64,000 nucleotides of DNA from Lepidodermella squamata (GCA_047495785.1 JBLDXI010000020.1:2046001-2110000); one strand, 5' to 3'; positions 1,970 to 57,242 are shown, counted from the stretch's first letter. The notes: generated by a model from the sequence alone, not told the origin. Made by a program: numbers and translations.

Positions 1970-3537
1970 ATGAGTCTCGGCAATGAAAGGAGGCCTATCA
2001 GCCATTGCGCTGAATCTGAGGAATTTTCGACCGACTCGTCCGAATGTAAAAAAATTCAGAAAATTGCTTATTGTCGCCCCATTTTGAAAATCGATCGAAT
2101 GTTAAGCGACGACGTCATGCATGCGGAAACTACTCTGCGCGGCCTTGTCACCGCATCTACTGAACTTTGGCCTTACGTTATCAAGGTATGAAGTCAGCTT
2201 ATTATAGATTTCGTCTTTCCCGAAACCTTTTTATATAGAAAATGCATGAAAGCGCCAAAATAATACCCTAAAATCAAATTACCTCCTCAGATTTAATTGG
2301 GACATTTTTCCAATGTTTTGTAATTCAGAATTTATGGGAAAAACCAAATGATCGTTGATTACTTCCGTTTGATATTTTTCTAAAATACAGGAAAATCTAC
2401 AAAAATAATTTCTTCAATTATTATTTCCAACATTTAGGACATGGAGATGAATGCCCCTGAAATCGACCCGAACATTGACCCCGACCTGCTTTGGAAATCA
2501 GCAATGAGCGATTTCAGGTACACTCTTGGCCCAGCCGCGTCTTTTGCTCGGAAATTGCCTGGTAACGCACTTTTCCAGTTCATTTCAGTATCATCGCTAA
2601 AAGTTCAATTTAAAAAATCTAATTTTAAATTTTGAGATATTTTATGCATAAAATTATCGACATGCAGCATCGCTAATTAACAAAAATTAGCGCAGTTCAA
2701 GTCTTAGAAAACCTGATTTTCGAGGGTATTGTGATGATAGCAGACCCTTTTAGCATCAAATTCGAAACAATCATACCTAATTTTCGCAATTCTCAGGATT
2801 TTCAGTTGTCCCTACATCCGATCGATGTTTTCTATTCAGCCGAGCGTTGGTGCCGCTAATCGTCGCACAAATGTCACTTCCTAAACTGCAATTTCTTCAA
2901 CCATTCTTCGGAATGACAGACACGAGCCGAACAGTATTCTTGAAATTTTTCCCTAATTTCACGGTAAATCAGCTTAATTTTAGAATTATTTTCATTTATT
3001 ATTCCTTATTTTTGTAGCGATTCAGTGACAAAATTGACGAAATTGTCCAGGTCCTGCGGGCATGGAATCCGGTCGATGCCGAGGTTGCGATTCTGGCTTC
3101 TTTCATTTTTTATCAAGGTATTTGAGAAGCAAATATTTACCAAGCGAAATTATTTATGATTTTTCTACAGAAGAGCTTCAGAACTATCTGATTCACCCTA
3201 ATTTGGTGCTTAATATTAAAAAGCGCCTCAAGGTAGTTTTGCAAGCTGTTCAGGGTCGGCTGCCGAACGCTGATCTCAGGGTATTTGAACTCGAAATTAA
3301 TTATAAATGAGTCTTTCCAATCGAATTTATTGTCTCAAGCTGCGTCACTTTATGCACTGCTACGATTTGCTGAGGCTAGTCGATCAGTGCTACCTGGACG
3401 GCGCGACGGAGCTGATGCGTAGCAAAAAATGTATAGCTCAAGACAACGTTTACGCCGAATTGTACGCTCAGCCTAATAAAACCAGCTCAAACAGCCGTTT
3501 CGACCATCTCATCACTTACCTGTCGTCTAGAACGTGA
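1970..3537 (+). CDS. Nuclear receptor LBD-only protein, copy 1 (~304 aa)
   Basis: Exons 1970-2185, 2438-2561, 2797-2963, 3018-3117, 3171-3280, 3340-3537 join in frame. LBD signature FARKLPGFSVVPTSDRCFLF, H8-9 WNPVDAEVAILASFIFY, H10-11 LRHFMHCYDLLR, H12 VYAELY. A possible micro-exon 1863-1870 adds MSPFCK. No zinc finger. Confidence 0.85.
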
Positions 3538-4908
3538 ACATCGTTATTATTTCGCAAAAATCGCTCAAAACAAGAAAAACTCAAATATCTCGAATTGTCG
3601 GAAAGAAATGCGTGGATGTAAATAAAATAATAAGTTGACTAGCCAGCTTAATAATAATCGACAAACAAAATACATTTATTTATCTATCCTACTTTTGAAG
3701 TGCTGCTTGTGCAGGCCTTGACGCCAGGAATAATCAGGAGCATAACATTATTAAAACAAAAACATATAGCGATGCCGTCTAGCGCAAGGGTGTTCGTAAA
3801 CAATAATGGTCAACAAGGCTTTATTGGCTGTGAAAAGTAATTCAGACCAAGGGGCTGCTCTGTCGCATGTAAGAGACAAGCCTTATAATCCGACCTTAAC
3901 GCAGCGCTAAACCAAGTATTATACTTTATAGAGCTACTTGCTTTCAAAAAATTGCACTCCTCGTGGAATAATAATTTAAATAAAATTAGAATTAGTAGGT
4001 CATGTCGCTGGCGGCGTTGAACTATTTAATATGTGCAATGAATCATCAGAATAGCGCGGCCGAAAACACGCATTCCATAACAAGCTTTTGTTCACCTTAA
4101 CACTAAATCTGCACGCGACCTTAAACTCGCTTTCACAAATTCTGTATCCGAGGTCACGTGGCCCTAACCTGCTTATTCACCCTCATGTAAAATTAATCCT
4201 GTTCGATTGATTGCGTGAGATCCTAAATATTAATCGATCATCGACAAACGCGGTGTGTCAATATTCGTTATTCGCCACTTTTATTCATTGATCGAAACAG
4301 CAAAACTCTTCATTTATATAAAACACCTTTGCTAACATCACTCATATTTTAAATTTGTCGAGAAAAATAAGTGCACGAATGCGCTAATTATTTCTTTTTA
4401 GTCTTTGTATTTTTCATATTTTTGTAGTTTAAATTGCCTGTTATTTAGTAATATCTCGAGACTATAGGCCGCCGTGATACTTTTGTATTATATTATATTA
4501 TGAGCAAATAATATAATAAATACACGTCTATAACTAGGTCACGTGTTTTTAAACATGAATTCACGGCGCTGATAGTAATATATGAAGGAGTACACATAGC
4601 ACATGCGCGCTGCTTCATTGATTATTTTTTGCTCTCACGTACAAACACACAGTATAAAATATGTTGTGAAGCTTATTCTCTGGCATTCAGTATACGATGA
4701 AAAACGAGAGGAAAGAAGTAGAATATTCTCCTGGTTTCTAGCCTAGTTTTTTCGTCGCGATATCAGAGTAATTTTTCATCCGCGGCGCATTAGGCTTGAT
4801 TCTAATATCGCACGTGCTTAAAAAAATTGGGTCAAGATCCACAAATTCACCATTTCTCGATTATTCTTCATTATAGAGAAGATTGATTTCGATTAATTTT
4901 TGAACTCA

Positions 4909-6172
4909 ATGCCTGGAAACGGTGATTTGAAACGTCGGAAATCTGATAACGACGCTGTCGATTTTAACGATGAAAACAGCCTTACTTCAGCCATGTCAAC
5001 AGCCTCTTCTCCAGCGGCAGAAAACGACGGCAGGGCAAGCTCTTCGTCCCCGTCTGGGGTGGTTGCATTATGCCGGCCAACCTTACACCAACCGCTGCCT
5101 GACCCTCTTGCTGCCAACAACGAGCGAACCCTCAAAAGTTTGTACGAGGCATGCACGGAACTTAAGGCTTACTCGAGCAATGTAACTATTCAAAAATGAA
5201 TTTTAAGGTGGATTTTTGTGCAATTCTTCTACTAGGAAATGCTGTTGAAAGAAGCAATCCTCGACGACGCCACTAATCTTGATAAAATGTGGCAGAACAG
5301 TATGAAATTGTTCCGCAAAAACACCGAACCCGCCCTTGCCTTTATCCAGCGGCTTCCAGGTTAAATTTCTCAGAACATTCGAGATTTTTTCTATGTTATG
5401 ATGACCTACTTTTTGCCGAACACAATACAGGAGTGCGTGCGATGCCAGATGCCGACCAATACACGTTATTTGCCCAGTCTTTCATACCTTTGATGGTAGC
5501 TCAGCTAGCTGAGCCTGGAATGTCAGACTACGTCTTCTTCGGATTGTCCAAGCAAAATACCAACATTTTTCTCCGGCGATTTCATCAGTATGAAGTGAGT
5601 GCATTTTTAGACCCCATTTTTCACTTGTCAAAACGCTATAATTTATATAGCGCATGCACTAGGTCTTGATCAAATAAAAAAGGGGTTTTAACAAATTTTT
5701 CTCTGGTTACAGCCAGTTAAGAATCAAATGGATGAAATCTGTGGGGTTGTCAAGCAATGGAATCCATCGCCGCCTGAACTTGCGATTCTTCGTGCTTTCA
5801 TTTTCTTCAGAGGTAAGTCGTGACCCAATTATCGCTTATCACTTGATAACGTATTCTGTTCTCCCAGAGGAGCTTGGGAACAATTTGCAAAACGCTGGTA
5901 TGGTTCACATGTTGTCGAATCGGTTGAAATTGGTGCTGCTCAGTGTGTTGGATAAAACGAACGATCGAGATCTGCGCCTGCGTCATTTTATGCGAGCCTT
6001 TGACCTACTTCGATCGGTTTACGACACTTATCTCGAAAGCGCATCATCGTGTTGCAACCACCGCACAGACATTCGTATCGACCCTCTCTACGTCGAACTA
6101 TTTCTGAAAAATCGCATCCCTTCGCGGAAACGAACAGTCGATGGGCAGATAATATTAAAACCTAACGCCTAA
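4909..6172 (+). CDS. Nuclear receptor LBD-only protein, copy 2 (~321 aa)
   Basis: Exons 4909-5181, 5236-5359, 5431-5594, 5713-5812, 5868-6172. Motifs FIQRLPGVRAMPDADQYTLF, WNPSPPELAILRAFIFF, LRHFMRAFDLLR, DPLYVELF. In-frame TAA at 4894 upstream of the ATG. Confidence 0.88.
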
Positions 6173-6673
6173 TTAATCTATATATAATTTAACGATATTT
6201 TCACCTTCTTCTTTTCGCGTATTTCCGGGGGAAAAGATATACTATACTTAAAGAAATACCTCGTTAACAGTTTTCTTTCTGCAAAGCTGATAAAAGTTGT
6301 TGACGATACAAATCGGTTTCAGATTGACGAAAAATAATAAAATAAAATGAGATCGTAGCTGTTTCATTTATTGACACGATTCTGGAGACACAGACAACCC
6401 TTCTGAAAACGGACCAGGCGTCAAATGGCGGCTGCAACCGGGTTAAGAGTGATCAAACAACTGCCAGACAAAAAATCGAGCGTTCATATTTGCATTGCAC
6501 CCTTAGAAAATAATGAGAACACACGTGACGATGAGCGCGCGTTGAATTGGGGTCCCCAGACGCTATGATGAAAGGCGTCCGCTGAAAACATGGTGTTCGT
6601 CTTTAATAAAAACTTGCCCTAATATCAGCTGGTCGGTGCTGGGACAAAGTCTTGCCAAAAACAAAAATAGCGT

Positions 6674-6702
6674 GTGACGTCGACTGATTAGCTTATATAA
6701 AC
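6674..6702 (+). promoter_or_regulatory. Putative core promoter of copy 3 (CRE-like TGACGTC plus TATA box)
   Basis: gtgacgtc at ~6675 and tatataaa at ~6694, ~50 nt before ATG 6748. Confidence 0.4.
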
Positions 6703-6747
6703 TTCCGGTTTTGAACTGAAATTGCGAATTGCATAAAATTAATCGCA

Positions 6748-7850
6748 ATGTTTATTGAAAATACTCCGGATTTAAAGCGGCTTGATACCAAGAAATCCCT
6801 TCCAATGGCCAAAGCTGCATGCATTCAACGACTGCCGAAGCGCAATGGCGTCGACCGATTCAACGTTCAACGAGTTTCGCTACCTGGACCTGTTCAATCT
6901 TCAAAGCCCAGCATTCCATCTATCGATTTTACGGTCCGATCTTTGCTAAGAATGGCCTCTAGCAATATACTTCGACTGGTACGTATTGAAAATTACTGAC
7001 AAAAATATTTTATAGGAAAATAAATGTTTAGGATACGCATCGAGTTCCAACTGAGGGTGAAGATGCAATGAGCTATTTCTTTGACTCGTTTGAAAACGGC
7101 CTCTTTCACATTCGAAATTTCGCTCGTCAATTACCCGGGTTCAACTTGTTGCCGAATGAAGATCGCTGTTCCATGTTTGCGGCTTCAATAATGCCGATTT
7201 TAATCGCTCAACTCGCGTATTCGACTCATCGATCTATTCCTAATTTTTCGAAACTAGCAGAATTTCTCGGCGTTTCACCTGATGCTTTTTCTCAAGTTGA
7301 CGCGGATGTTGAGGAAATTTGTCGAGCGATTTCGAGCTGGAATCCATCGCCAGCAGAATGGGTGCTACTTCAAGCGATGCAATTTTTCCAAGGTTTGACT
7401 TCGTTTTTTCTTCTCAATTTTAAATATTTTATTTTCAATTTTAGAACCAATTAAATTGTTAGCTCTTCGCAACATCGGCGAGGCAGAGGTGATACATCAG
7501 CTTCACGAAAACTACAAATCATTGCTTCTCGAATACCTGAAATCTACACTGAATGATCAGTTCGACTTGAAGGTAGAACAAATATTTTGAACTAGGGCGG
7601 ACAAAAACAAAGTTTATTCTTAAATTTGCAGCTGCGCCATTTTGTCCGTGTTGCCGATCTGTTGCACGTGTTCGCGCTCGACTACGCGAAAATCGCACCC
7701 CAATTATGTCAGTTATGCTGCGATGGCGGCAAAACTGGGTCATCGATTATTACTCACCAACAACATCCATCGACAATTCGCGATGTCCGGGCTCAGAATC
7801 AACTAATTCGGAGTCGAGTTTTCCACGAAATTTATTGCTATTCAATCTGA
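6748..7850 (+). CDS. Nuclear receptor LBD-only protein, copy 3 (~312 aa)
   Basis: Exons 6748-6978, 7032-7392, 7445(or 7463)-7572, 7632-7850. Motifs FARQLPGFNLLPNEDRCSMF, WNPSPAEWVLLQAMQFF, LRHFVRVADLL, VFHEIY. In-frame TGA at 6712. Confidence 0.85.
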
Positions 7851-9869: not shown

Positions 9870-10444
9870 AATTAATTCGGAATGACTGCTCGTACATATA
9901 TATGTACGCGATTTTTGCTGCTCGTACATATGATATGTACGAGATTTTGGCTGCTCGTACATATATATGTACGCGATTTTTGCTAGTCGTACATATATTT
10001 CAAAAATATTTCTGCTGAACTTTGAAATTAAATGGATTAATCAATTTTGATCGCAAATGTTCCAAATTTTAACCATATGTGCATCGAGGCGTGACCAACC
10101 TCCCCTCAAAGTTTGGCATGCATAGGGTGAATACCCATTATTAGCCAATCTGAAACCCGAAATTACCCGAAGTCGGTAATGTCCGGAACCATAACCGATG
10201 GGCGGGTAAAAGTTTGCAGGTGTGTGGAACCCTGTTAGAGGCATTTGCCCTCAAAAAATGAACTTGCCAGGATTGAAATTGAGTAATTGGCTGAAATTCT
10301 AAGTTTTCATTCGAATATATGTACGACTAGCAAAAATCGCGTACATATATATGTACGAGCAGCCAAAATCTCGTACATATCTTATGTACGAGCAGCAAAA
10401 ATCTCGTACATATATATGTACGACCAGAGTCACTCTAATTAATT
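9870..10444. mobile_element. Foldback-like non-autonomous element with modular palindromic TIRs
   Basis: Arms ~9870-9998 and ~10314-10444 are reverse complements, each built of ~3.5 units of ~32 bp containing the palindrome CGTACATATATATGTACG. Confidence 0.8.
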
Positions 10445-10988
10445 TTAGCTCAAGCCGAGTGACCTTTCTTCCAAAGCAGTATCAAGTCATTATGCAAACA
10501 TGGCATTTCTCGCAGCTTTCGGCAGTCATAGGTCTTCTTCACGAAAAATTTGTTCTAGCTAGAAGCTGCCTTAAAAAATCCACTTTCAGCTTAATCGATC
10601 TAAATTTTCGAATATTGTCTGGAAAGTAGGGCGCGACCACAACTCATAAGTCAATATTCGACACTTGTTAACGTCATTAATTCCTATAACAACGTTGATA
10701 TATTTCATATGGCGCACTCGTGTCCGACTTTAACATGCCGAATCGATCGATCCGAATGTATAGTAAGTATAGAGTTATGTGTATGTGTTTTCGCACTCAG
10801 TTTTGTATATATAATGCATTATTTTACCACTTTACGTGTGGAAGTTGCTCTAGCTACCTTTGCAAATGCGTCGCTTATAAAGCGTGAGAATATTCGATTG
10901 AAATTTGAGTAATGCTTCCGATATTTTCTTATTTTAAATCACTTTTGAATAGATGCTCCACTGTTAGAAAAAATAAGGCCGCAATAAT

Positions 10989-12094
10989 ATGTCTGAAAGA
11001 GAGGATGTCGACGAGAACTCTATCAGGTCAGTGTCGACCCTTTCATCAGCAGATTCGACCGAGTGCGGCCGACCTACCGCAGTTTGTGCCCCATTTCGGG
11101 TCGCCAGCGAAATTAGTTCGATGGCCCATCAAGACGCCATAAATGCCGAGCAAACACTCCACAGGCTGGTTAAAGCATCTCGAGAGCTGGTCACATTAGA
11201 AGGCCCGGTTTGTCCTAATTATTGAAATTGATCTATAAATTTATTGAATTAATTTTCTAGGATATGGTCGGAAGCGTCGGCCTGATGGACCCTAATTGCT
11301 CGCATCTAAAAATGTATGCCGATTTGATGAAAAATTTTCGTCAAACCATCGACCCAGCTATGAGATTTCTCGAACAACTACCAGCTTACTCCGCCCTTGC
11401 GCAACGCGATCGAGCTTTACTATTTTCCCGGTCTTTCCTACCTTTTGTCGTCTGCGAGTTGTGTTTGCCGGCTAATAATAAGAATGCGTTTTTCGGCTTC
11501 AATGAACACAATCGAATGTTGACAATGCGACTCTTCCCCGAGTATGAATTATTCGGCGAGGTTATCGAAGAAATTTGCCATGTTTTTAACATCTGGAAAC
11601 CTACCCAGTTCGAAGTCTCACTTTTACTGGCTCTATTATTTTATCAAGCAGGTTTGTTCCATTATTTATGTGGATTTTTCATTATTTCGAAATTTTTAAA
11701 AAATATTTAAATTAAATTAGTTTAAATATGCATACATATTTTTTAATTTGTTTATTTTGTGTTGATATTTTTAGAACTGGCGAGTGAGCTTGCTAATCGC
11801 GTGATTGTACTCAATGTCATACGCCGTCTGAAACTAGTTCTTGTCTCCTCGTTGTCCCGGTTTGATAGACACACCTCCGATTTACGCCTACGCCATTTTA
11901 TGCGCGCCTACGACCTCATTCGATCGACACCCATCGTGTATCGCGATATTGCTTCAGATATTTTTAACCGGTTACATACCCGACAGCTACCCATCGACCC
12001 GTTATACATGGAACTGTACGTCAAGCAACACCGGGATACTACTCATTTGAATCGGCTATTCGCAGCTTCGCCACGGACTATTGTTCAGTCTTAG
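10989..12094 (+). CDS. Nuclear receptor LBD-only protein, copy 4 (~309 aa)
   Basis: Exons 10989-11207, 11261-11651, 11775-12094. Motifs FLEQLPAYSALAQRDRALLF, WKPTQFEVSLLLALLFY, LRHFMRAYDLIR, DPLYMELY. Confidence 0.88.
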
Positions 12095-12931: not shown

Positions 12932-14590
12932 CCCAGACGAACGCCGGTCATATTACTGTCATATTAAAATACGCTTAAATTCATATTAATCATGCCTTAC
13001 AATACATGTTACATTCATATAGTAAAATGTCCTGAATGTAATATGAATTTCGAGAAAAATTCATATGAATTTTCCGCGAAATTCACATGACATTCATATT
13101 AATCACGCCATTAGAATCATATTAACCAAAAAACCGAATTTCATACGGTTGTCATATGAATAATCAAAAGAAGTGCTCGCCACCTGGGCAACGCCAAGGG
13201 ACACCTACTTGGGGGCTCCAAGGTGACACCCATGTCATCTGGAGGTGAAGGGAATCTTGAGATGGGTTCCAGGTGGCTCAGAACTAAATATGAATAAATC
13301 GAAAGGGATAATTTACTTACGTCGTAGGTCGGAGTCGAACCCGGGTCGCCTTGGCTTGAAGTGCGACGCGCTACCACTAGACCAGGTCGTCGCTATTATA
13401 CGGTGGATGTTAATAGGGGTATATGAGTTTCAAGATTTTTTCCAGTTTTCAAACTTCAGAGGGCAAATCATGTAGCTTGCACTGCTCATAGAGCAGTTGG
13501 AAACAGGTATCCGGTCATCCATGGTACTCACAGGGGGCGCCTAGTATCTATGGTTCCCAGTTCCCAATATCGTTCATTGTATGTTCTGTTTTATTTATTG
13601 CGTTGTATTTATTGGATGCTACTTATAGAGTCTTACTTTTACCGGAACAAAATTTTGAAATATTCAAGGGGCCTAAAGCCACTCATGAACAATTTCAAAA
13701 ATGTAGTGATCAATCAGCATAATTTTAAATAGATTAAATAAATCAGCTATAAATTCAGTGTAAAATTTTGTTTAAGACGCATTCCTCACTATAAGATGCA
13801 TTCAATTCCTGAATTTCGAAGAAATATTCGAAAAGCGACCTTTAGCTTATCTAAAATTAGGTTCCGCAACAGGCAAATTTGGTTCTGCTACAAGATATTT
13901 TCTTATATTTATCAGTCTTTTTGTGTTAATTCTATTCATTACAGAATCGTTCAAATATTAGTTTGGTGTAAAAAATCGCCTAAATAATCAAAACGAGCAT
14001 TTAGAAATTAGTGCATGCGCTGCGAAAATTGCGACTTGGCGCACACAAAAGAAATTTCGAATACTCAAGTTTAATGGCGAAATGAGGCATAGGCGAACCT
14101 CTTTATTTCACACCTACTGGACCTAATAGCAGTACTCAGTATGATCCCAGAGGTTTATCTCACTACTACCAGAAAATTTGTAGAAACTTAAGCATCTTTT
14201 TAATATGAAAAGAAGCGTCTTCTTTCATATGAAGTTTCACATGAATTACAAGCGGCTATGCTCAGAACTTCTAAGAATAGCCGATCATATCAAATCAATA
14301 TTACCGTAGAAGCAACATTTCATATAGTTGCTAGTAATATGACATTCATATGACCGCTACTCGAACATTTCATACTAATTCGTATGTCAGGACAAGAATC
14401 AGAACAATATGAAATTCATATGAATGTAACTTACAAAATTAAATTTTTTTTAATTTTTGCTAAATTTAATACTAATATGATATTCATATGAAAATTACAG
14501 TATTTTTCATACCAGATATCAATTCATATGACAACCTTATGAAACACGTATGAATTTGCCTTGAAAACATATGAACGGCGTTCGTCTGGG
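12932..14590. mobile_element. Non-autonomous DNA transposon, CMC/EnSpm-like
   Basis: 15-bp TIR CCCAGACGAACGCCG / CGGCGTTCGTCTGGG, 2-bp flanking duplication TC, many subterminal (A)TTCATATG(AA) repeats at both ends, no transposase ORF. Confidence 0.8.
13321..13391 (-). pseudogene. tRNA-derived sequence (pseudo-tRNA/SINE-like head) inside the transposon
   Basis: Minus strand has A-box TGGTCTAGTGG and B-box GGTTCGACTCC at tRNA spacing; acceptor and anticodon stems do not pair canonically. Confidence 0.6.
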
Positions 14591-15314
14591 TCGTGAAATT
14601 TCTTTATTTTAAGGCTGATTTTAAACCCCGAAAAACTGGGTTTCGCCCAAAATTACCCTGCTACCATACGGTAATGGAAAATTCTCGCTCTAATAATTAG
14701 TGGTGGACATGCAGTTTTCCACTGACATCATCTTATGCCAATGCGCAGTAGAATTCCAGCAGATGATGCCGCTTTCTATTTTTAGCCAGCCAAGTCACCA
14801 AATTGTCGCACACTAAGCTCGTCGTCTCTTCGATCATTTGTGGACACAAGTCATACCGAGTTGGTCATGCGCCCGCACCTCTTGACACAATTATTATAGT
14901 AACGTGACCTCAAATTTTCCCCTCATTTATTCTTAGCTCACAAAAAATCTAAATTTCAACCATTTCTGTCGCTTTTCTTTTCAAGTTAGCGAAATCAGTG
15001 AAAGAGCACTGAGCCACGGGGGCTCAAATTTCAGAAGCCATCATTATCCCCTTTGGACATTACATCGAGTACAGATAGGTATGAAATAAGCTCTTATTTC
15101 GAATTATAAGCTTTACTTAAAGCGAATGACGTTGAATCATTCAATTATCTTAAAAGTTACTTCTGCCCTAATTTTTGCCTCTAATTGATCGCAGTCTCAC
15201 GTGACTATAAACTTCGAAAATGTGTTTTTTTCACAAAAATGCACCAAAGGCATAAATCTTGTCTATCCTCCCCACAAGATACAACTAAATTTTTTAACTC
15301 ACTGATTTTAGAAA

Positions 15315-16442
15315 ATGCAAGCGAGTAATTCGTCATCAGACTTGGATGCTCGGCAATCTCTTTCCGACGACGAAACTAAGCCTACCCCACCCAGCGCCCG
15401 AGCCATCGTCAAAGCAAACCGTCGAAGTTCAGACACGTCCGAGAACACAAATCTTCCGCAGCGTCGCGAGGCTATCAGTATCGAATCAACAATCCAACGC
15501 CTTATGACCGCTTATGCCGAGTTGAACGCGTACGAACGAGCTGGCCTGATGCCGGAGAGCACCCGCGTAATCTCAGACATGACCCAGTTTGACCACGTGT
15601 CGCTTTGGAAATTAGCCATGACCCGTTTCCGCGAAATTCTCCCGCCCGCTATCACGTTTTGCCGGCAACTCCCCGCCTTCAACGCTATGCCTGTTGAAGA
15701 CAGGTGCAGGCTATTCGCCGATACCGTTCTACCTCTCTATCTAGTACAATCAGCCTGCCGCAAGGTGCCGACTGCTCTTCGAGAGAACTCGTTGATCAGC
15801 TCGAAATCTACATCAATACGGCCGCTTTTCATCGGCTATTTCGAGCCTTACCAACCTCTGGCTGGTATGGTTGATGAAATCGACGCCGCTATTGAAAGTT
15901 GGCAACCTAGCGATGAAGAAATCGTCGTGCTTCTCGGTTTCCTTTTTTACGAAGGTAATTTTTGTTAATTTCGTATCAGCAATTATTTTATTTACATTTT
16001 ATTCAGAGAGTAATGCCGATCTCATGAGCCCTGTTTTAGTGGCAAACATCGCACAGCGCATGAAAAATGTCCTCAATTCAATATTAAATCAAAGAAATGA
16101 TCACGACAACATAAGGGTGGGAAAATAAAAAATCCGCCTTAATAATTATTTATTTGTGTTTTTTTCATTTTATAGCGACGTCATTTCATGCGCGTTTTCG
16201 ACTTGCTGCGGTGTACACAACAATTTGCCGTTGAAGCCACCCAACAGCTGTTCAAAAAGCCCTTGTCGCCGCCCGCGTCAGAACTACACGTCGATCCTGT
16301 GTTTTGGGAAGTCATGGTTCGCCGTCCATTGCCCAGCGATGCAAAAATCATCGAAATTTCCGCAACTGTTGACGCCATTGCTGAGGAGCCTGAGGCGCGG
16401 AAAGGTTCTTTATTTCCATGTCTCTTTCAACTGCTGAAATAA
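15315..16442 (+). CDS. Nuclear receptor LBD-only protein, copy 5 (~338 aa)
   Basis: Exons 15315-15954, 16007-16116, 16176-16442. Motifs FCRQLPAFNAMPVEDRCRLF, WQPSDEEIVVLLGFLFY, RRHFMRVFDLLR, DPVFWEVM. Ends LFQLLK. Confidence 0.88.
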
Positions 16443-16853
16443 CGCTCACATCTGAAATCATCTCAATTTTTATTTATGTTAATCGCCTCCTGCCTTTTTC
16501 TCTCTGTCGACATTGTTGTTATATTATACCAATGACCTTTGCTTGTTTGTTGAGTTTCAATGACCCAAATTGCGTCCAAATCGCAATAATTAACGCCAAG
16601 TCGTTTTATTGCTGAAAGGAGGTGCAATAAAATTGTCACTAATCGAGATCACGCGACTTTTGTTTGTTTAGCAGCTCTAAATGAAGAGGCCTAAAAAGAT
16701 CGCGTGTCAGTTTTTGCCTGGCCGGACGGCACGTGTTTTTTGGAGTTCGCAGACGGGTTCGATAGACCCAATCTTGCGGGTACTCGCATACATTTAAAAA
16801 CAGAAAATTCACGCACAATGTTTTAAATTATTTTATTCCTCCGATAATTCCAA

Positions 16854-19217
16854 ATGAGTAGCCAGCCACACCAACCTAAAAGCTCGACAAATTTTGACCG
16901 CTTCGATGACGAGACCAAGTCTGACTTGAACAATTTACAACAATTACTAGCGTCTAACCCATCGTCTCAACAGCGAGTTCAAATTATGCCGAACACCCAG
17001 GAGGATGTTGCGTTTGAAGCAACGTTAAGGCGACTGGTTAACGCTACTGCCGAGTTCAAAACGTCCCTAGACACCGGCGTGGCATCGGAATCATCGCCGA
17101 CCGATCGCTCGTCTACCTGGCAACGACAGATGGCCTTGTTTCGACATGCCGTGCGGTCAGTCGCCGCTTTCTGCCGCCATTTGCCCGCATTCAGCGCCAT
17201 GCCAATCGACGACAGATGCCGCCTTTTCGCCAACTCGTTTCTGCCGATATTTCTCGGACAACTCGCGCATCAGCCGGCGTCGGTTAGGCAAAAGTCGTTG
17301 TTCTATGCGATGAGTGGACCGCTATCGACGCAACGCCTCGCGTTTCTGTGCCACTTTCCGCAGTTTCAACATTTTATTGTTAAAAGCGAGGACATTTTCA
17401 ACACGTTTGCAGCCTGGAAGCCGTCTGCTGAAGAATCGGCTCTGCTATTCGCCTCGCTGTTCTACCAAGGTCTTTGCTATTTCGCAAAAAATCTCAATTT
17501 TAAACTTTGCTTTTGATCATTTGTCTCAAGTTTTAGCGAATCATTATCATTAACGCCACCGCCAAGGCACGAAAGGGGCTTTTAGGAAGTGATAGGTGAT
17601 CTTCAACTCCGAAGATTCATACTTGAAATGAAGCAAAAACATTTAGTTGAAGGATTTACCATTCGACCGCAGCGGCTTACGGCCTTCGGAATGTATGTAA
17701 ATCCTGTATGAAAAGTTCGGAATACAATGCGAGGGTTATTTTTTCCTCGCGAAATCTAAGCATTTTTTTAGTCTCATCACTGTCGAACTAAACGTCAGTT
17801 CGATTCGCGCCACTTGGTTACCTTCCTTGAAATTATAGGCCTGCCGTGGCATTTTAACAGGAAATTAATCTTTGCCTGTCTCTTTCAACATGTCCTTTTT
17901 CTAGGTCAAAGCCAATGTCCCCTAACGTAGTGGCCATTGATAGAAAATATGAGATGTTGACCCTATCGATTATTGTAGAATGTCAGGAGTCTAATTCCAA
18001 AAAAAATCGCTCCAGATATAAAATCCAGAGTTATAGGTAATGGTTCTCAAACCTTTAAGAGCAATAAAATCCGTGGAACTTTGGTCGGATATTTATGGAG
18101 GCTATTTATTGATGTCGGGATCGTTTCTTCGAATAATAACCACCGAGGCTGTATAGGTAATGCAGGCGCTGTATGGGTACTGCAAAAATCGATTTGCTAT
18201 AAATATCGACTCGAATTTGCTATAAATATTTGGTCGATTCGAAGCAGATTCTAAGAATAGAACTCTCTCTTGTTTTGGCGGATCTATCTTGTCATTTTGT
18301 TATTTTTATTTTTTGTATTCATCAAATTTTTGTAGACAGGAACATTCCTTGGTACTTGAGCTAAAACCTCCGAATTCGGCCGAGTTCGAAAATAGATCTT
18401 CGTTTTCATCATATTCCTCCCTTCAAACGTTGCTTTGCGGTCAAAATCTAGGGCATTTTTATTCACCCAAATTTTATAGGGTAATTTGTCGGAATTCAAC
18501 TGAAAAATGTGCGCGTGTCATCGAAAATGTTTTTGCCAAATGGTTCATTCTCGAGTCAAATATAGCCATGCCCCAATTTTGAAAGAATTTTGACCGGATC
18601 GGCTTACCTAGAAAGGATGGATTGATTTTATCGGTCTTACTTGGAATTTTTCGTGAATTTCGATCACTTCGAAGTTAGTCTTTAAACTTTGAGTTTCCGC
18701 GAACTGTACAAGCCCTTTCAATACCAATTTTAAAATAAATTTTGCTTTATAATCAGTTGCTAATAACTTTTTGTACCCCCTTCAAGACGGCGTGGAAGGC
18801 CTCGTCAATTCGCATCTCGTTCGCAACGTCAGCGAAAGGTTGAAAACAGTCCTCATGGAGTACCTGAAGCGACAAAACGATCTAAATTACTCTCGAGTAA
18901 TATTTCAAGATAATTTTCGAAAAATCATCAATTTTTTATTTCAACAGCTTAATCCTTTGCTGACGGCTTTCGATTTACTGAGGCAAGCCCAGCTGAGTTG
19001 CATCGACGCAAGTTCTAAGGTATACCCGCATTCGAGCGGAGTTCAAGCTTTACCGATCGAACCTCTGTTTTGGGAAATTTTCGTGCGCCGCCCGATGCCG
19101 CCTGGATTCCCGGAACCAACGCTCGACGCTAATAGCACGGCTGCAACTCCGACCCCGAGTTTGTTTCCGAACACAGTGAAACCTAAATTACCTCACTTGG
19201 CTAAATTGTTGGAGTAG
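16854..19217 (+). CDS. Nuclear receptor LBD-only protein, copy 6 (~331 aa)
   Basis: Exons 16854-17469, 18787-18896, 18948-19217. Motifs FCRHLPAFSAMPIDDRCRLF, WKPSAEESALLFASLFY, EPLFWEIF. Ends HLAKLLE. In-frame TAA at 16845. Confidence 0.88.
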
Positions 19218-20806
19218 ACTCTCATTTTATTACTGTATATAAAGAATTAATATTACCAATTTTTGACATTTATCGTAATTTCCGACACTGCTATTGTCCA
19301 TTATGACTTGAAGAAATAAAAACAGACAGGAATTTGGCAAAAAGGCTTTACTACTTTATTTGCTCAACTCAACTTTCTCGCAGTCCGGGTCCGTGGAACG
19401 ATATATTTATTTCTGATTTGTGGGAATCTTCGAAATACATATCCTAATGATTAATATCGCTTTGCTTCCTTTCATTCCGATCTTACTCCGGATCTTTTAC
19501 AAACCTCCATTGAGTCTTTTTGGTTTATTAAATTCGGAGCAGATTTTTCGTAGATTCTCCGAAAACCAGGCTAAAATTGTGCAGTTTTGCTCCAGTAAAA
19601 GCCAGACTTTCATTAATGCGGGCCAAATTGTTCATCGGCTCGCCCCGCCGACTAGTGCGTTGTTACAAATAAAAATATAGTTCAATAGTTGCAACCAGTC
19701 GGACAAAACAAAGCCAGACTTGCGTTACAACGGACCGAATTTTGCATAACAAGGTGCGCCTTGTAAATATATTTTTCAACCAGAGGCTAACCCAGTTTTA
19801 TTGTCATGAAGCGGTCTGTTTTTATTGAGATGGACAAAAAATAAGCAAGTCCGCCTTAATACAAAACGACTTTATTGATAGATCCCGATACGAACTAGTC
19901 GGCCTTCCGGAACGGAAATAGAGCACAAAAGGTCTTTCTTTCTAAAATCGACTGATATAAATCTTTAATTTCAATCCCAGTTTTGTAGACCCTCGTCGAG
20001 AACCTAGAAATTAGAAAATTAGAAAATTCAAAACCGCTTGGAAACTAGGTAACACCCGAGTTTTATGGAAAAATTTCTATAATTTGTGCCCAAACTTTGT
20101 CAATATCTGACCATGTTCTAGCTTTTAGCTAGCGAGCTTTTGTTTCTCGGGCTCTAGACATCCTCAATAATATGGCTGGGCATATTTTGGGACATCTCAT
20201 TTTGACCTGGAATAGCTGAAAACGTAACGACCAGCTTTTTCCGAAACCAGTCCAGTTTGTAGGGAAAGAAATTGGCTATAAAGACCCCAACATTTGCTTC
20301 GAGATCTTCGGAATTCGGGATCTTTTTCCGAAAGTTCCACCTTCAAAGTTGAAAGTGTGAAGTTCCTATATCCTAAACTCCTTTCATTGGGTTTGAAGCA
20401 AATGATAGGAAATCGCCGTCTTGATTCGGAAAAATCGGGCGTTTCGTTTTTCGGCTTCAGGTGTCCCAAACTATTTTTTGTTGGAGGTTTTTAAATTAAA
20501 GGTGCTGGGACTGAAAAACCGGGGTTAAAATGGAAGGAGGTGGGCAAGTTGGTGATTCACCGTTGATTTGAGAAAAAAATTAGCGTATCAACCATATTAT
20601 TTTGTTCCGTTTTCTTTGATGAATCAGACGACCATCTGACACGCCTTTTCTTGTGGTTGGTCTTTCTATAGTGAACTTTGTCTTCAAGCCTTGATTTGCG
20701 TGACCTAATTTTTGTTAGTGGAAACACCTGCAGCAGTTATATCGAATAGGGCCGTATGGCATTTTCAAGGTTAAACACGTCATTTTCAAATTCAAATTTA
20801 AAAATT

Positions 20807-23330
20807 ATGAGTAACAGTCCGTCACAGAAGAAACGAACGTTGTACGATGTCGACGATGATGAGACCAAGGCGGCTATCAAGGAGCTTCAAGAGCGGCTAA
20901 CGCCTCAAAAATCACCTCGCCGCGTGCCGATTTCGCCGAACAGCCAGGAAGAAGCGGCCTATGAATCAATGCTGAGAAGGTTAGTCACCGCTGCGGCTGA
21001 ACTACGCGCCGGTATCGACATGGCCCCGAAATCTGCCTTCGAACCTCCAGTTATCAATGAGGTCTCGCTTTGGCGCAAATCCATGCCGGTATTCCGCGAC
21101 GCTGTTCGAGCTGTGGCGGCTTTTTGCCGGCAATTGCCGGCTTTTGGCGCCATGCCAATAAATGACAAGTGCCGGCTGTTTGCCGACGCCTTTCTACCGA
21201 TTTATCTCGGCCAGTTGGCTGAACAGCCGGCTGCCGTCAGGCAAGGATCGCTATTTTATTTAATGAGTGGCGCGTTATCGCCGAAAAGGCTCGAGTTCTT
21301 GCGACATTTTCCGCAACTAGAAGAGTTGGCGAAGCAAAGCGATGACATACTAATGGCTTTCGCAGCCTGGCGACCGACTAGTGAAGAATTGGCGATACTT
21401 CTAGCGACGTTTCTCTATCAAGGTTATAATTCAAATAATTTTTTGCTCGAATTTCTACCAAATCATTGGTAGCTTAGGTAGTGAAAGGTAAATTTGGATA
21501 AAACAATATTTCTCGAAGTTTAAAAGGTCAGTAATTTTACAAATTTGAGCATGGTGATTCTTGATTTTCTGGGTGATTTTTGGGAATTTCCTATTCATAC
21601 CTGAATTTTAGCAAAATTTGAAGCGAGATCCGCTAACCTTGCATAATTAGCAGGTATGCTTAAGGACGCTCATTTGCATATGCAAAAGTCATGTACGTTA
21701 TAACGTTAGGGTAGAATTTTGGGTAGAGTTTCGATTTTGGGGAAAAAGAAGATGGTGGGACATCAGTTGGTTTTTTTATTGTTGATGACTAAAATAGCGA
21801 CTGAATTCTGGGCGTTCAATAAAACCGTGCATAAGCCATAGATAAATAAAAAAGAGAGATCTGACACGCTAGTACATTTATGTGTGCCGAAATGATTCAT
21901 CAAGAGTTTTTGCTTCTTGGTCGCGTGACCTGAAAATCACTTGTCAACATCACTATAAAAAATACGGCATAATCTACGCAAGTGACAAGTGATTTCGGGT
22001 GGCTACTTCACCTCATTTTATCTCAAAACACACCCCCTTCGATTTTCTCGAAAAAAATAGGGCATGTAGATCTCACCTTCAACTCAACGCTTGTCTAATC
22101 GGAATTTCCGGCCAGGGCATGGTTGTTGGTAGAAAAATTCTGAAAGAATAAGCACGTTTCCGCGCAGTGATTATTATTGCTTTTTCTAGCTTTGTGCAAA
22201 AAATCGCCTGATGAATCACGGCGTCATCTGCAATAATTATGATTCACGCCACCAAAATAACTAGCTATCAGCTCAGCGCCATTAAGTTGATTGCTGAAAT
22301 GTGGAAGGTTTGAAAAATTCTAGAAAAATAACGGAAGGCCGGCCGCAAATTCGGAAAAAATTCAGATATGGCTCGAGTTTGATACTTCAAAATAAAATTA
22401 TTTCAAAAAAAATCGAAGGGGGTGTGTTTTGAGATAAAATGAGGTGAAGTAGCCACCCGAAATCACTTGTCACTTGCGTAGATTATGCCGTATTTTTTAT
22501 AGTGATGTTGACAAGTGATTTTCAGGTCACGCGACCAAGAAGCAAAAACTCTTGATAAATCATTTCGGCACACATAAATGTACTAGCGTGTCAGATCTCT
22601 CTTTTTTATTTATCTATGGCATAAGCTAATTAGGCGTGCACTCTTATGTCCAAATTTACCCGTAACTTCACTAACTTGAATAAAATCAAGGTAAATTTTT
22701 AAACTTCTAGAAATGTTCACTGCCATCGGATATCTGCACTCCTTTTTGCTCCCACAATTTCAAAGTTATATCATTTTTTCCTGATTTTCAAGACCCGAAA
22801 TCATGGATTTAATACGTGAATACCAGGTAGATTAGACGTTATTAATTTGTATTTTCACATGTAATTATTAGTCCCATTAACATAATTTTTTGAATTTCTG
22901 AAGACAGCTTGGATTGTTTGGTTAATCGCAACCTGGTCCAGTCCATCAGCCAGCGTTTGAGGGTCGTTCTGATGGAATTTTTCAGAAGGCGAAAAGATCC
23001 TAATTATTCCAAGGTAAAAGCTTTAAATAATTCCCCCAAATTTTTAATAATTTTGTTTTTTAGTTGCATCAATTCGTTAGCGCGATTGATTTGTTGAGAC
23101 AAGCTCGGCAAATTTGTATCGAAGCTTCGACAGCGCTGTTCCCTGTTAATACCGCGTCGAAGCTGCCTATCGATCCCATCTATTGGGAAATTTTCGTCCG
23201 AAGACCTATGCCGCCTGGCATGCCAGAACCGGTGAAGAAGCCCAGTTCGATAATTCATCTACCTCCATCAGCTTTGTTTCCACGCTCAGCAGACCTTGCC
23301 CTGCCTCATCTTGCTGCTTTGTTGGAATAA
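20807..23330 (+). CDS. Nuclear receptor LBD-only protein, copy 7 (~330 aa; alternative start 20756)
   Basis: Exons 20807-21422, 22904-23013, 23064-23330. Motifs FCRQLPAFGAMPINDKCRLF, WRPTSEELAILLATFLY, DPIYWEIF. Ends HLAALLE. Closest paralog of copy 6. Confidence 0.88.
21837..22618. mobile_element. MITE with ~210-bp TIRs and 8-bp TSD (P/hAT-type) in intron of copy 7
   Basis: Termini CATAGATAAATAAAAAAGAGAG / CTCTCTTTTTTATTTATCTATG; near-perfect arms ~21837-22050 and ~22405-22618; GCATAAGC duplicated at 21829-21836 and 22619-22626. Confidence 0.9.
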
Positions 23331-24741
23331 TTGATTTATTAAGAAATAAATTCAGAAATTTTACTTTTTTTCATCTTCGAGAGAAATAAAGTGATGTAGT
23401 CTAGTTTTAATTTGGCCAAGTGATCAAAAATAGCCTATGGTGACATTTCTAGGTAATTTATTGTAACCTGCTATAATTAGTCAAATGTATGTTACCGAAA
23501 AAGCGATCATTTTCCCCAGTTATAGGAAATAGCCGATTAAATGCCAATACGATGATGCGCGCCATCAAATAATGAGGGTCTGTTGCGGAAACTTATTGCT
23601 AGTGACAGGTGTGCGCTGGACGCGCTCGAGCGTGGTTGATAATTCTTGACACACCGCACTAAAAATTCTGCACAACACAATAATCACCTGTTCGACCTGA
23701 TTCACGCTGACAGCAGCAGCATTGACGTTTTTTCACCTTCAACACACCCGCTCGTCAGTTCAACACTTGTCACTTGCAATTAGCTTAATTACGTATATAC
23801 CATAGTCCCTTTCAGTGTGAACATTTAACAGCTTGAAATTTCGAATATTCAACATTTTTTGTGGATTTTTCGCAATTTTTATTTACCGAGAAGTCTTTTT
23901 TAAAGTCTGTAACCCTCCAAGCTTCGTATTATTACATATTTAGGATCATAATATGGCTTCCCAGCATGATGAGGCTTTGTAATAATAAAATAACAATATT
24001 ATCTATAATAAACACATTTGCCCTCTCAAGCCGCGAATGAAGCGAAAAAAGCCCATCGTTATATAAGGAGTCAGGAACACGTTGTCTGTGTGATGAGCTT
24101 CATTTTCAATCAATCAATTTAATCACTCGAAATAATAATATATAGAAAAAATATCACGCAGGTGCACACGTATGAAATGAACTCTCATTTTTTAAACACT
24201 GTTTCCTTTCGACTACTCGATTTAAGCGCGTCGCGTCTGCTTCCTTTACTACTCGCAAAAATCCAGCTACGCTTTCGCCTCAGCTACTTAACGTATTGCG
24301 AGGTATCGAATTCGCAGACCGACTCTAACCACGACTTTTGCCTCAGCAGCACTCGATTCGCTTCGCAATCACGGGAATTTTTTTAAATAGTTATTTCCTT
24401 CGGATTTGCGCAGATTTTCCGCTTAAAAAAATGAACATTTTTCTTATAGATTTTTAATTGCGAATTTTTAAAAATTCAAATATGACCAGTTTTATTTTCA
24501 GGTTCCTTTTTGTCACATTCTAGGATTTTTTCATTCTGTGTGTCGTAATGCGTGCAAAATAATTACAGCGATTGTGTTCGCACATATGAATAATCACAGT
24601 CAAATCTGGCCTAATCCTTTAATTATATGTCACTTGATGGTGGATCTTTTACGACCGCCGTCGTCTCGATGAAATTCATTACAATTTTTTGCGCTGTCTC
24701 CGCATAGAGTTTTGATCGTATTTTTTAAACATTCTGGAATA

Positions 24742-27215
24742 ATGATCTACAACCAAGACATCATCGACTTCTATCGGCCCTCCAACGCCGTTTCTACATC
24801 ACTGCAGCAAGCGCCTGCAATCGTCCAAAGTTATGGCTCATCTTATCCCACCAGTGGAACTCTTTGTTTGGTTTGTTTACACGCCAAATTCTTGATTTTA
24901 ACGGTACTATTTTGTCCTAAAAGGTGTGTAATTCTCGAAAGCCTTGTCCGAGTGTTCGCAGCAAGCAGCCGACGATTTGCGAGGCCTGCAAGGTGATATA
25001 AAAAAAAATCTGATTAAACTCATCAACCTGTTATTTTTTTTATAGAAATTTTTCCTCCGACATCGCGATCTTAAAGTACAGCAAGGTTTGCAATGTGCAA
25101 CCGGGCGTGGCGATTGCGACGTCACGGTCACGGCCAAACGTCCGTGTTCTTCTTGCCGCCTAGCCAAGTGCTTCAACATCGGCATGCGGTTTGAAGGTTT
25201 TCTTATTGAATTCCAAATTTAGATGAAATAAAATCAACCATAATTTTAGACTACCCAATGCGGACAAAGGCGAGTAAGCGATCTCTGACGGGTAACGTCA
25301 TCTCGCCTTCCCAACTTCGCCAGCAGCAGATGCTTCAAATGCGAGCCGATCAGTCTTACGCCAATACGACACCTGGCGGGTTTTCGATGAGTAAACGAAA
25401 ATCTATTTCGAGCAACAGCGACTCATCACCGCCGAATGACGACCAATACGCAGGAAGCCCGGAAGGTTCTTCTGGCAAAAGTGATTCGCCCGAGCAGGCT
25501 GATTGCGAGTATGACGAAATTTTCGACTTGACGTCAACGGGCGCTGCTGGCCCGTCGTCAGGCAATGCCATGGCGATTGTTTCTATTCCGCAAGGCCTCG
25601 CGCTTACTGGCTTCTGTGAAGATTTGCTTCAAAAATCGTTAAGAGCCCTATCTGAACTATCTGCATTCGAAACAGTTCGTTTTTTAGCCCGCATAATTAG
25701 GGTTTCAGAACATATGCGTGTCTCAGACGGAGCCTTTTTTAGCTGGCGTTTTTCCAATAATTAGGCATTTCAAAATTCTAGACTGATGGCGGGATGAATC
25801 ATTTAAATTAAGTTAATGGGAATGGGAACTTCATCGATCCTTGGGACCTTTTATTTTTAATGCTAAAATCTTCGAATTTGCTAAATTTCGATTTTTCATT
25901 TCGCTAGCTACCTCTCCGGCGTCAGATCGATCGAATTCCCGATGAAAACACATGGTGGCAGTTGAAAATGGAACATTTCCAAGCCGCTGCCAGGAGCGCA
26001 ACGGCCTATGTTCGCCAACTTCCATGTTCGATCCGCCTTAAAAATTATTATTTCCTAAATAAAATTGTAATTTTTTCAGCCTTCACCACAATTCCGTTAG
26101 CTGATCGTCCTGTCCTATTCGCTAATGCTCTGTACCCGTTATTAATCGCCGATTTGGCGCTACCTTCTCAGCCACGTGGCCTATCGTTTCTCGGCATGAA
26201 TGAGCGAAATCGGGCCGAATTTTTGCGGCTTTTCTCCGAATTTCAGATGCTTTACGATGACACGAATCGAATCACCGAAGTTTTCGCGCAATGGTGCCCG
26301 ACCATGTTCGAATTCGCCATCCTTGCCGCTCTGCTATTTTACGAACGTAAGTCATCAAAATTTACATTTCTCGAATTCAAAGCACTTGAAATCGATCAAT
26401 TGAAGTGACAAAATTGTTAGTGAGGCTCTTTTGATCAAACATTCACCCTTTTAATGAAACGGGTCATCATCTACCCATTTCTTCCTAGACAGTTTGGACG
26501 GTTGTGTGAGAATCTAAATTCGGACATTTCGATTTTCACATGACATTTCACGTGATATTATAATTGAGATGAAAATTGATTGATCACTTAATATGAACAA
26601 ATTTTATCGTAAACAGCCTGTTTCCCCGGTCTGCAGTGCGCGGATATGGTCCGGCAGGTTCACGACCAGTTGAAATCCTTACTCCACGTCTACCTGCCGA
26701 AGCAGTGCTCGAACCCGAAACTGGTCAACTGGCGGCTGGAACAGTTCGAAATCGCCTTCAGCATGCTGCGACGCGCCTCGGTCGACCATTGTTTAGCCAT
26801 TGAAATGCTGGCTCGGCGGCGACCGGGTTTCGTGTCGATGAACGACTTGTTCTTCGAAGTTTTCACGCACACGCAACGCGCCATCAGCTTAATGTCCCAG
26901 CAGCGCCAGGACACCCAATCACCGTCGTCAACCGCGTCATCGTCCTCCTCCTCAGGCAGTCCGGGTCATGAAATTAGAGAGCGGCCCTTGGTTCTCGCCC
27001 CACTGCCTCCGCCTCAGCAGTACGCCCCGCAGAATTACCTAGCAACCGGCACGTCCGGGATTGTGTCGAATTTCGACTACAACAGTATTTCCGACAACGC
27101 CAACCCGGATAGTGACGAGACGTACTTGAGTTTTGAGCACGCTTTCAGCCACCCGCCGACTTCAACGAGTAGTGTAACGACGTCATCTTACTGGCAACCG
27201 GCCAGCTATACCTGA
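24742..27215 (+). CDS. Full-length nuclear receptor (atypical C4 DBD with CEACKK P-box plus LBD), ~585 aa
   Basis: Exons 24742-24870, 24924-24992, 25046-25196, 25250-25674, 25908-26025, 26080-26346, 26617-27215 join in frame. DBD CLVC-x16-CEACKKFFLR..CATGRGDC-x9-CSSCRLAKCFNIGM; LBD YVRQLPSFTTIPLADRPVLF, WCPTMFEFAILAALLFY, DLFFEVF. Confidence 0.9.
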
Positions 27216-57218: not shown

Positions 57219-57242
57219 GTCCGACGGGCTGCGGAAAAAGTC

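Follow-up and report, generated by a model that had tools for sequence, protein, structure and literature searches.

Genes at the locus

We analysed a 64-kb stretch of DNA from Lepidodermella squamata (GCA_047495785.1, JBLDXI010000020.1:2046001-2110000), called the window below, with positions counted on the whole stretch and on the + strand unless marked. Between 1970 and 23330 it holds seven uninterrupted coding sequences on the + strand, c1 to c7, whose predicted proteins of 304-347 aa each contain a complete nuclear-receptor ligand-binding domain (LBD) and have no DNA-binding domain (DBD). Beside them lies an eighth gene, g8, which encodes a related LBD together with a DBD (Table 1). The window has a G+C content of about 40% and the look of a compact animal genome, with short GT-AG introns, mostly of 50-60 nt. 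Gene models were built by hand, joining open segments at canonical GT-AG sites, with positions backed by homology among the copies. The uninterrupted models bear out a first-pass annotation of this DNA, made from the sequence alone, which had described seven intact genes on one strand and given their coordinates and lengths.

Pairwise identity among the eight genes is 21-53% across the whole LBD, c6 and c7 (53%) being the closest pair. One intron, after FYQ/E (phase 1), is common to all eight genes; another, after helix 1 (H1; phase 0), is common to c1-c4 and g8, a third, after QLP (phase 1), to c1, c2 and g8, and a fourth, before LRHF (phase 0), to c1, c3, c5, c6 and c7. The c3 protein carries an insert of about 26 aa ahead of helix 12 (H12).

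Gene g8 has one divergent DBD, joined by a hinge of about 120 aa that lacks Cys to an LBD related to those of c1-c7. Its fingers are spaced C-x2-C-x16-C-x2-C and C-x7-C-x9-C-x2-C, and the exon carrying the second (25046-25195) matches Pfam zf-C4 (PF00105) at 3.5e-7 (31 bits). A similarly long first finger, C-x2-C-x14-C-x2-C with the P-box CEACQK, is found in a metagenome receptor (P0062). The zf-C4 match and three intron positions shared with the copies in place and phase support the initial description of an eighth gene with a DBD and the same LBD motifs and intron sites.

The N-terminal tails of c5, c6 and c7 are variable apart from a DDETK motif that all three keep (15366-15380, 16905-16919 and 20855-20869). 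It forms residues 18-22 in c5 and c6, and would sit at nearly the same offset in c7 if translation began at 20807, which suggests that the second ATG is the c7 start. Two foldback elements were also observed. One (21829-22626) lies within the 1481-nt intron of c7, has arms of 230 nt that are 97% complementary and spaced by 338 nt, and probably accounts for the unusual length of that intron; the other (9883-10427) lies in the c3-c4 spacer, its inverted 114-nt arms, also 97% complementary, being made of ~32-nt tandem units (TGCTCGTACATATATATGTACG...).

Table 1. Receptor-like genes and neighbouring features of the window. AF-2, activation function 2; bits, score against a hidden Markov model (HMM) of LBDs from receptors with two DBDs (2DBD-NRs); UTR, untranslated region.
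Feature	Position and strand	Exons	Product and remarks	AF-2 core	Bits
c1, DBD-less LBD gene	1970-3537 +	1970-2185, 2438-2561, 2797-2963, 3018-3117, 3171-3280, 3340-3537	304 aa, 5 introns	VYAELY (3448-3465)	73.9
c2, DBD-less LBD gene	4909-6172 +	4909-5181, 5236-5359, 5431-5594, 5713-5812, 5868-6172	321 aa, 4 introns	LYVELF (6086-6103)	93.5
c3, most divergent DBD-less copy	6748-7850 +	6748-6978, 7032-7392, 7445-7572, 7632-7850	312 aa, 3 introns	VFHEIY	33.1
c4, DBD-less LBD gene	10989-12094 +	10989-11207, 11261-11651, 11775-12094	309 aa, 2 introns	LYMELY	59
c5 5'UTR exon, non-coding	~14984-15078 +		run X1 contig; spliced to 15312 over intron 15079-15311		
c5, DBD-less LBD gene	15315-16442 +	15315-15954, 16007-16116, 16176-16442 (coding)	338 aa, 2 introns; 3' end near 16644; LxxLL: LFQLL, 16422-16436	VFWEVM	
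c6, DBD-less LBD gene	16854-19217 +	16854-17469, 18787-18896, 18948-19217	331 aa, 2 introns, the first 1317 nt; LxxLL: LAKLL, 19197-19211	LFWEIF	
c7, DBD-less LBD gene	20756-23330 +	20756-21422, 22904-23013, 23064-23330	347 aa (330 aa if second ATG, 20807, is used); first intron 1481 nt; LxxLL: LAALL, 23310-23324	IYWEIF	69.7
g8, DBD-bearing relative	24742-27215 +	24742-24870, 24924-24992, 25046-25196, 25250-25674, 25926-26025, 26080-26346, 26617-27215	579 aa, 7 exons	LFFEVF	80.5
g8 DBD	24865-25156 +		P-box CEACKK; predicted first-finger splice over 53-nt intron 24871-24923		
SGF29-like gene	28702-29361 -		downstream of g8; order conserved on metagenome contig L005 (27750-36300)		
DPH1 (diphthamide synthase) exon	32509-33291 -		as above		
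Zinc transporter (ZnT-like)	34346-36263 -		as above		

Ligand-binding domains of the copies

All seven copies show the LBD landmarks, namely the H3 signature F..xLPxF...D..LF, W.P..E and FYQ/E, and in all seven as well as in g8 the H12 core keeps the pattern hydrophobic-x-E-hydrophobic with the AF-2 Glu. The Pfam Hormone_recep model (PF00104, gathering score 23.5) was run on exon pieces of c2-c7 and g8. It scored above gathering on c3 exon 2 (35.6 bits, 8.5e-9), c4 (28.7 bits, 1.1e-6) and c6 (30.8 bits, 2.5e-7), fell short of it on a piece of c7 (18.9 bits), and gave no match on the shorter exon pieces of c2, c5 and g8. A family profile was made from the aligned H1-H8 pieces (alignment A1); run against all PDB chain sequences, it matched receptor LBDs only, with RAR-alpha (9e-6) best, then ROR-gamma and Rev-erb-beta.

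An independent HMM, built from 19 canonical 2DBD-NR LBDs of other organisms (252 positions), matched all eight spliced proteins at 33.1-93.5 bits, and 1600 shuffled controls scored 6.6 bits at most. Because of this gap (33-93 bits against at most 6.6), the likeness of the c1-c7 sequences to LBDs is far above chance. The match reaches position 244-249 of the 252 in five proteins and ends near 226 in c5, in c6 and in the main match of c3. A family profile from H1 to H12 matches LBDs of receptors that do have a DBD over its full length, and the H9-H10 region of the copies aligns with canonical receptors. Motifs and HMM scores together uphold the first-pass annotation in its statement that all seven copies keep the LBD landmarks, the AF-2 Glu of H12 included.

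We also obtained a structural model of c6 H1-H8 (154 aa) with AlphaFold2 from a 57-row alignment (A2), with a mean predicted local distance difference test (pLDDT) of 90.1 and a predicted template modelling (TM) score of 0.84. Every one of the 50 best matches that Foldseek gave for it in the PDB is a nuclear-receptor LBD (TM score about 0.70 by query length, probability 1.00). An LBD fold is thus predicted for H1-H8; the annotation had named the lack of one as contrary to its proposal. A c5 H1-H8 model from an 8-row alignment was discarded, its pLDDT being 66 and its Foldseek and VIA-align matches meaningless.

Absence of a DBD, and transcripts of c5 and c6

A regular-expression scan of the 64 kb in six frames found receptor-type zinc fingers only in g8, and a permissive tblastn search with the g8 DBD found nothing similar elsewhere in the window, whether in the 3-kb spacers or in the long c6 and c7 introns. 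Nor did these scans find a hidden second DBD in g8 or DBD remnants 5' of the copies. In all seven copies, an in-frame stop lies 2-10 codons 5' of the ATG (5 codons in c2). The annotation had reported no zinc fingers in copies 1-7, which both scans corroborate, and stops before the ATG of copies 2, 3, 4 and 6, which proved right and extends to all seven.

RNA contigs were examined over 14300-20299, which spans c5 and c6. Run X1 is of RNA type, with exon depth, spliced contigs and zero depth across 17500-18099 in the c6 intron. Its spliced contigs confirm three predicted introns, 15955-16006 and 16117-16175 in c5 and 18897-18947 in c6; c5 and c6 at least are transcribed and correctly spliced. 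An X1 contig also adds a non-coding leader exon to c5 (joint 15075/15309, GT..AG, cut +3). This exon terminates in TAC AGA TAG; in the spliced mRNA the TAG stands in frame with the ATG, two codons 5' of it, and because the leader closes with this stop, the c5 mRNA encodes a DBD-less protein. For c5, then, the junction to an upstream DBD exon that the annotation had named as contrary to its proposal was not found. At the 3' end, a polyadenylation signal (AATAAA at 16626) and the contig end at 16644, 210 nt ahead of the c6 ATG, rule out a joint transcript; c5 and c6 are separate transcripts.

Run X1 further contains low-depth (2.5-4.3) joints between opposite strands at 14964-15262, just 5' of c5, and at 18188-18655 in the long c6 intron. 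Hairpin or antisense transcripts could explain these joints, as could an assembly artefact.

These observations bear on the idea that our models are incomplete and that the LBD units are spliced or trans-spliced to DBD exons upstream or outside the window, which would make them ordinary receptors. A 5' end is documented for c5 alone, the window reaches just 1.97 kb upstream of c1, for which an alternative 5' exon could lie outside it, and a library protein that seemed DBD-less (P0076) turned out to have DBD exons upstream. We nevertheless consider incomplete models very unlikely: the 64 kb contain no second DBD-like sequence, stops precede all seven ATGs in frame, the c5 leader is non-coding and closes with a TAG, the c5 polyadenylation site precedes the c6 ATG, and an upstream DBD exon serving c2-c7 would have to skip entire genes.

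Selection and age of the copies

Comparing the window with the strain(s) in runs X1 and X2, we counted 15 coding differences in c5, of which 14 are synonymous and one non-synonymous. With 779 non-synonymous and 235 synonymous sites (about 3.3 non-synonymous changes expected for each synonymous one), the ratio of the two proportions of changed sites (pN/pS) is about 0.02, and c5 is under strong purifying selection. The dN/dS near 1 that would have counted against the annotation is thus not seen in c5, the sole copy with usable data. The strain differences listed for c6 (two synonymous, two non-synonymous) are too few for judgement. Between paralogues, pS is 0.70-0.87 in every pair and pN 0.30-0.59; with synonymous sites saturated, dN/dS among paralogues is unusable, and the saturation indicates that the duplications are old.

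All seven reading frames, each some 310 codons long, are still open, with motifs and intron phases kept, which is hard to square with pseudogenes. That the copies are decaying relics, transcribed pseudogenes without function, could be argued from c3, which is very divergent, sits on a long branch and has a remodelled C-terminus, and from the lack of orthologues of the DBD-less copies in 1.84 billion representative proteins. Set against the seven open frames at saturated synonymous sites, the retained motifs and phases, the 14:1 ratio in c5 and the spliced transcripts of c5 and c6, such decay is highly improbable, and the genes are apparently functional.

Family placement

An exhaustive HMMER search with the A1 profile over the 1.84 billion representatives returned 66 proteins at E <=1e-3 and none at 1e-30; a word-indexed search with c6 exon 1 gave zero matches, relatives surfacing only through the exhaustive profile search. 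The nearest matches are unnamed metagenome proteins in the European Nucleotide Archive (ENA), from small-intron animals, with one divergent DBD whose P-box is of CxAC type (P0009, P0014, P0015, P0062). The best-scoring named relatives are canonical 2DBD-NRs (18 of the 66), which have the P-boxes CEACKK and CEGCKG and whose LBDs score 36-48 bits against the profile; a truncated call from a cluster with a two-DBD member (P0008) reaches 60 bits, and the best solved nuclear-receptor LBD 29. Cestode proteins are also among the matches. HR96 is absent from the named matches, no HR96 sequence having been compared directly. In the window itself the two-DBD CEACKK/CEGCKG architecture is absent, g8 having a single DBD (CEACKK) and c1-c7 none.

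We then built maximum-likelihood LBD trees from the window genes and the matches of the A1 profile only, with no other nuclear-receptor subfamilies and no NR0B. In these trees c1, c2, c4, c5, c6 and c7 form one clade (support 98/97), which is sister to g8 plus P0062, the DBD-bearing metagenome receptor (87/78). The position of c3, a long branch, is unsettled, and forcing c1-c7 together costs 1.7 log-likelihood units (approximately unbiased test, p = 0.24). A 100/99 split parts the window genes and CxAC-type receptors from the canonical 2DBD-NR clade. Of the monophyly of copies 1-7 with g8 that had been proposed at first, six copies are thus firmly grouped, while c3 is unplaced and the test does not reject a clade of all seven. 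The family is best read as part of a fast-evolving receptor clade, probably allied to 2DBD-NR/NR7 and to the undescribed single-DBD receptors of CxAC type. A tree in which the six-copy clade is sister to g8 and P0062 fits a history in which an ancestor resembling g8 lost the DBD once and the gene then multiplied in tandem.

We also weighed whether the array is instead an expansion of the bilaterian NR0B family (DAX-1/SHP), with no independent DBD loss. Its architecture is LBD-only, three copies carry LxxLL motifs, and an NR0B2 cluster came second (0.96) in a search on language-model features, a lead only, since this rank may reflect how long the query is and how it is built. The nearest sequences by profile and tree are DBD-bearing, CxAC-type receptors and 2DBD-NRs, three intron positions are common with g8, and no NR0B chain is among the 60 listed PDB matches of the A1 profile. 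Structures of DAX-1 and SHP exist in the PDB. Profile search and a tree of A1 matches thus speak indirectly against a link to NR0B, and we give an NR0B origin hardly any credence. What stands of the radiation by local duplication proposed in the first-pass annotation is that the DBD-less copies are intact, are related to g8 and arose by duplication on the spot; its framing as a matter of vertebrate NR0B was overstated.

Relatives in other genomes and metagenomes

For g8, an orthologue (P0002) is present in metagenomes, with 75% LBD identity over 77 residues. A cluster-mate of P0002 lies on an ENA metagenome contig, L005, which keeps the second zinc-finger exon and is syntenic with the window over g8, the SGF29-like gene, DPH1 and the zinc transporter, with exon DNA identity of 68-84%. 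This contig begins inside the g8 orthologue, the upstream region falling outside it. Since gene order and exon identity match the window, a relative of this animal is evidently present in the metagenome.

Counts of library proteins without a DBD are unreliable, since prokaryote-style gene calls begin after the DBD. P0076 and P0013 were ruled out as DBD-less by CEACK/KFF DBD exons just upstream, and P0025 by a call that starts within the second finger. Only the gene of P0003, on contigs L001-L003, has no DBD-like exon anywhere in its searched 17-kb locus. This single-copy gene (L001 ~6328-7452), from a metagenomic small-intron animal, has three exons, 297 aa, a related LBD and an in-frame stop before its ATG. 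It shares the H1 and FFN/K intron positions, falls outside the window-gene clade, and may be a further DBD-less member of the wider clade. A predicted 3384-aa protein of the oribatid mite Medioppia subpectinata (P0007), also matched in the library, has two CESCKAFF P-boxes and some twelve stretches with weak similarity to LBDs. It is probably a tandem array of receptor or LBD genes that the annotation joined into one.

A proposed role for the DBD-less copies

In our favoured reading, which we hold with reasonable though not full confidence, c1-c7 are old tandem DBD-less LBD paralogues beside a DBD-bearing relative, and most probably modulate DBD-bearing receptors as LBD-only proteins. In the simplest history, the DBD exons and part of the hinge would have disappeared from a g8-like ancestor with a single DBD, translation starting from a new codon, and the DBD-less gene would then have duplicated locally many times, early enough for synonymous sites to saturate. 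As the copies have no DNA-binding part and retain LBD and AF-2, they would modulate DBD-bearing receptors, g8 or others, either by LBD-LBD heterodimerisation or by competing for coregulators through the conserved AF-2 surface. Adjacency alone suggests g8 as a partner.

Only c5-c7 end in an LxxLL motif (LFQLLK, LAKLLE and LAALLE), which follows a conserved (S/A)LFP island in the variable tail. No conserved terminal motif was seen in c1-c4, and the rest of the proteins was not systematically searched for LxxLL. The motif might dock in the AF-2 groove of another receptor, in the manner of the SHP/DAX-1 nuclear-receptor (NR) boxes, or fold back on its own.

A more elaborate version of this proposal, which we think rather unlikely, is a split modular system: g8 would be one DNA-binding subunit, the seven diverged copies individually expressed LBD-only subunits pairing with g8 or other receptors, and the LxxLL of c5-c7 a built-in NR box. 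An NR7-related lineage would then have gone stepwise from two DBDs through a single one to the final state without any. If true, polypeptides that can be combined would divide between them the sensing of ligands and the targeting of DNA.

The copies might also act without receptor partners, as soluble binders or buffers of lipids or small molecules, or as coregulator sponges through AF-2 and LxxLL. The complete LBD with the AF-2 Glu in all seven copies would suit such a role, identities of 21-53% between copies fit diversified ligand pockets, and dimerisation of c1-c7 is itself argued by analogy. The known DBD-less receptors (NR0B and, as proposed, HR96-LBD) work through other receptors, however, and the alignment of H9-H10 with canonical receptors speaks in the same direction; we see only a small chance that the copies work alone.

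Several observations weigh against the modulator reading, or limit it. Transcript support, from RNA contigs over 14300-20299, is for c5 and c6, and within c6 the exons are covered by X1 contigs while the junction of the 1317-nt intron is not among the joints listed. The short upstream sequence of c1 has been mentioned above. No close orthologue of c1-c7 was found in the 1.84 billion representatives, though g8 has one. The charge-clamp Lys of H3 is replaced, by Arg in most copies, by Gln in c2 and by Glu in c4. The fold model covers H1-H8, with H9-H12 resting on profile alignment, and the 57-row alignment behind it includes bona fide receptors. Its Foldseek E-values are 3.7e-3 at best and never reach 1e-3, which we attribute to the query being a truncated domain.

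Other features of the window

The best identity of the DPH1 exon among 5.8 billion proteins is 54-57%, with animals, fungi and a choanoflagellate tied; the host lineage is poorly sampled or fast-evolving. Two cation-efflux (ZnT-like) genes, the transporter listed in Table 1 and another at 38720-40497 on the + strand, flank a leucine-rich-repeat gene (37168-38136), and the + strand copy has a long His/Gly-rich loop with HGHSHGGGG repeats. An intact-looking retrotransposon (54084-57971, - strand) has an open reading frame (ORF) of 1044 aa, which on visual inspection appears to encode an endonuclease and a reverse transcriptase, with a 242-aa ORF1 ahead of it.

Comparison with known systems

The closest parallel comes from the spider mite Tetranychus urticae, in which 47 DBD-less HR96-LBD genes, some in tandem, exist beside 8 canonical HR96 genes, and in which the tandem pair HR96-LBD-1a/b controls detoxification genes, as established by RNA interference (RNAi) (Ji et al. 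2023, PMC10435515). Like c1-c7, HR96-LBD is a lineage-specific LBD-only radiation with tandem copies and DBD-bearing paralogues, and LBD-dependent dimerisation has been proposed for it. The parent families differ, HR96/NR1J in the mite and a 2DBD-NR-related, CEACKK-type clade here. Function in the mite is known from RNAi and expression quantitative trait locus mapping, whereas c1-c7 are known from sequence and transcripts alone; c1-c7 in turn are seven deeply diverged copies in a single array, three of them with a C-terminal LxxLL.

NR0B orthologues are present in spiralians, as CgNR0B in the oyster (PMC4070562) and nr0b1/2 in Platynereis (PMC13012086). Together with the mite genes (PMC10435515), they contradict the first-pass implication that LBD-only receptors amount to vertebrate NR0B. 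NR0B resembles c1-c7 in being LBD-only, and it uses LxxLL-type NR boxes and partners or represses DBD-bearing receptors; it is an old gene in one or two copies, whereas c1-c7 form a tandem array with 2DBD-NR-like sequence relatives. The NR boxes of DAX-1 and SHP are N-terminal or internal, and the LxxLL of c5-c7 lies at the extreme C-terminus; these three copies allow a possible convergence with SHP/DAX-1 to be examined.

The ctenophore Mnemiopsis has two receptor genes without a DBD, possibly ancestral (PMC3038971). Those are non-bilaterian genes, whereas c1-c7 would be a derived loss within a DBD-bearing clade, followed by radiation. The supplementary nuclear receptors of nematodes share with c1-c7 an explosive, tandem, fast-diverging and lineage-specific expansion; they are HNF4-derived, unlike c1-c7, and typically retain the DBD.

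The 2DBD-NRs (NR7) are receptors with two DBDs, the first of which has the P-box CEACKK (Wu and LoVerde, PMC1810520, PMC10497141). The P-box of g8 is the same; g8 differs in its first-finger loop, of 16 residues against 13, and in having one DBD against two. In the open-access literature we found no description of DBD-less derivatives of this lineage. Receptor surveys are mostly DBD-based (PMC8363021 and PMC10497141 classify by DBD), so that LBD-only members are missed systematically.

A lineage-specific radiation of DBD-less receptors is, as a concept, already published. New here are the 2DBD-NR-related CEACKK parent lineage, the seven-gene array kept beside a DBD-bearing relative and the subclass with a C-terminal LxxLL. 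DBD-less receptors appear to have arisen independently once more at this locus, besides NR0B, HR96-LBD and the ctenophore genes, in line with a pattern in which expanding receptor families repeatedly lose the DBD and then radiate, and the array with g8 offers a compact natural test bed for LBD-only modulation of receptor networks.

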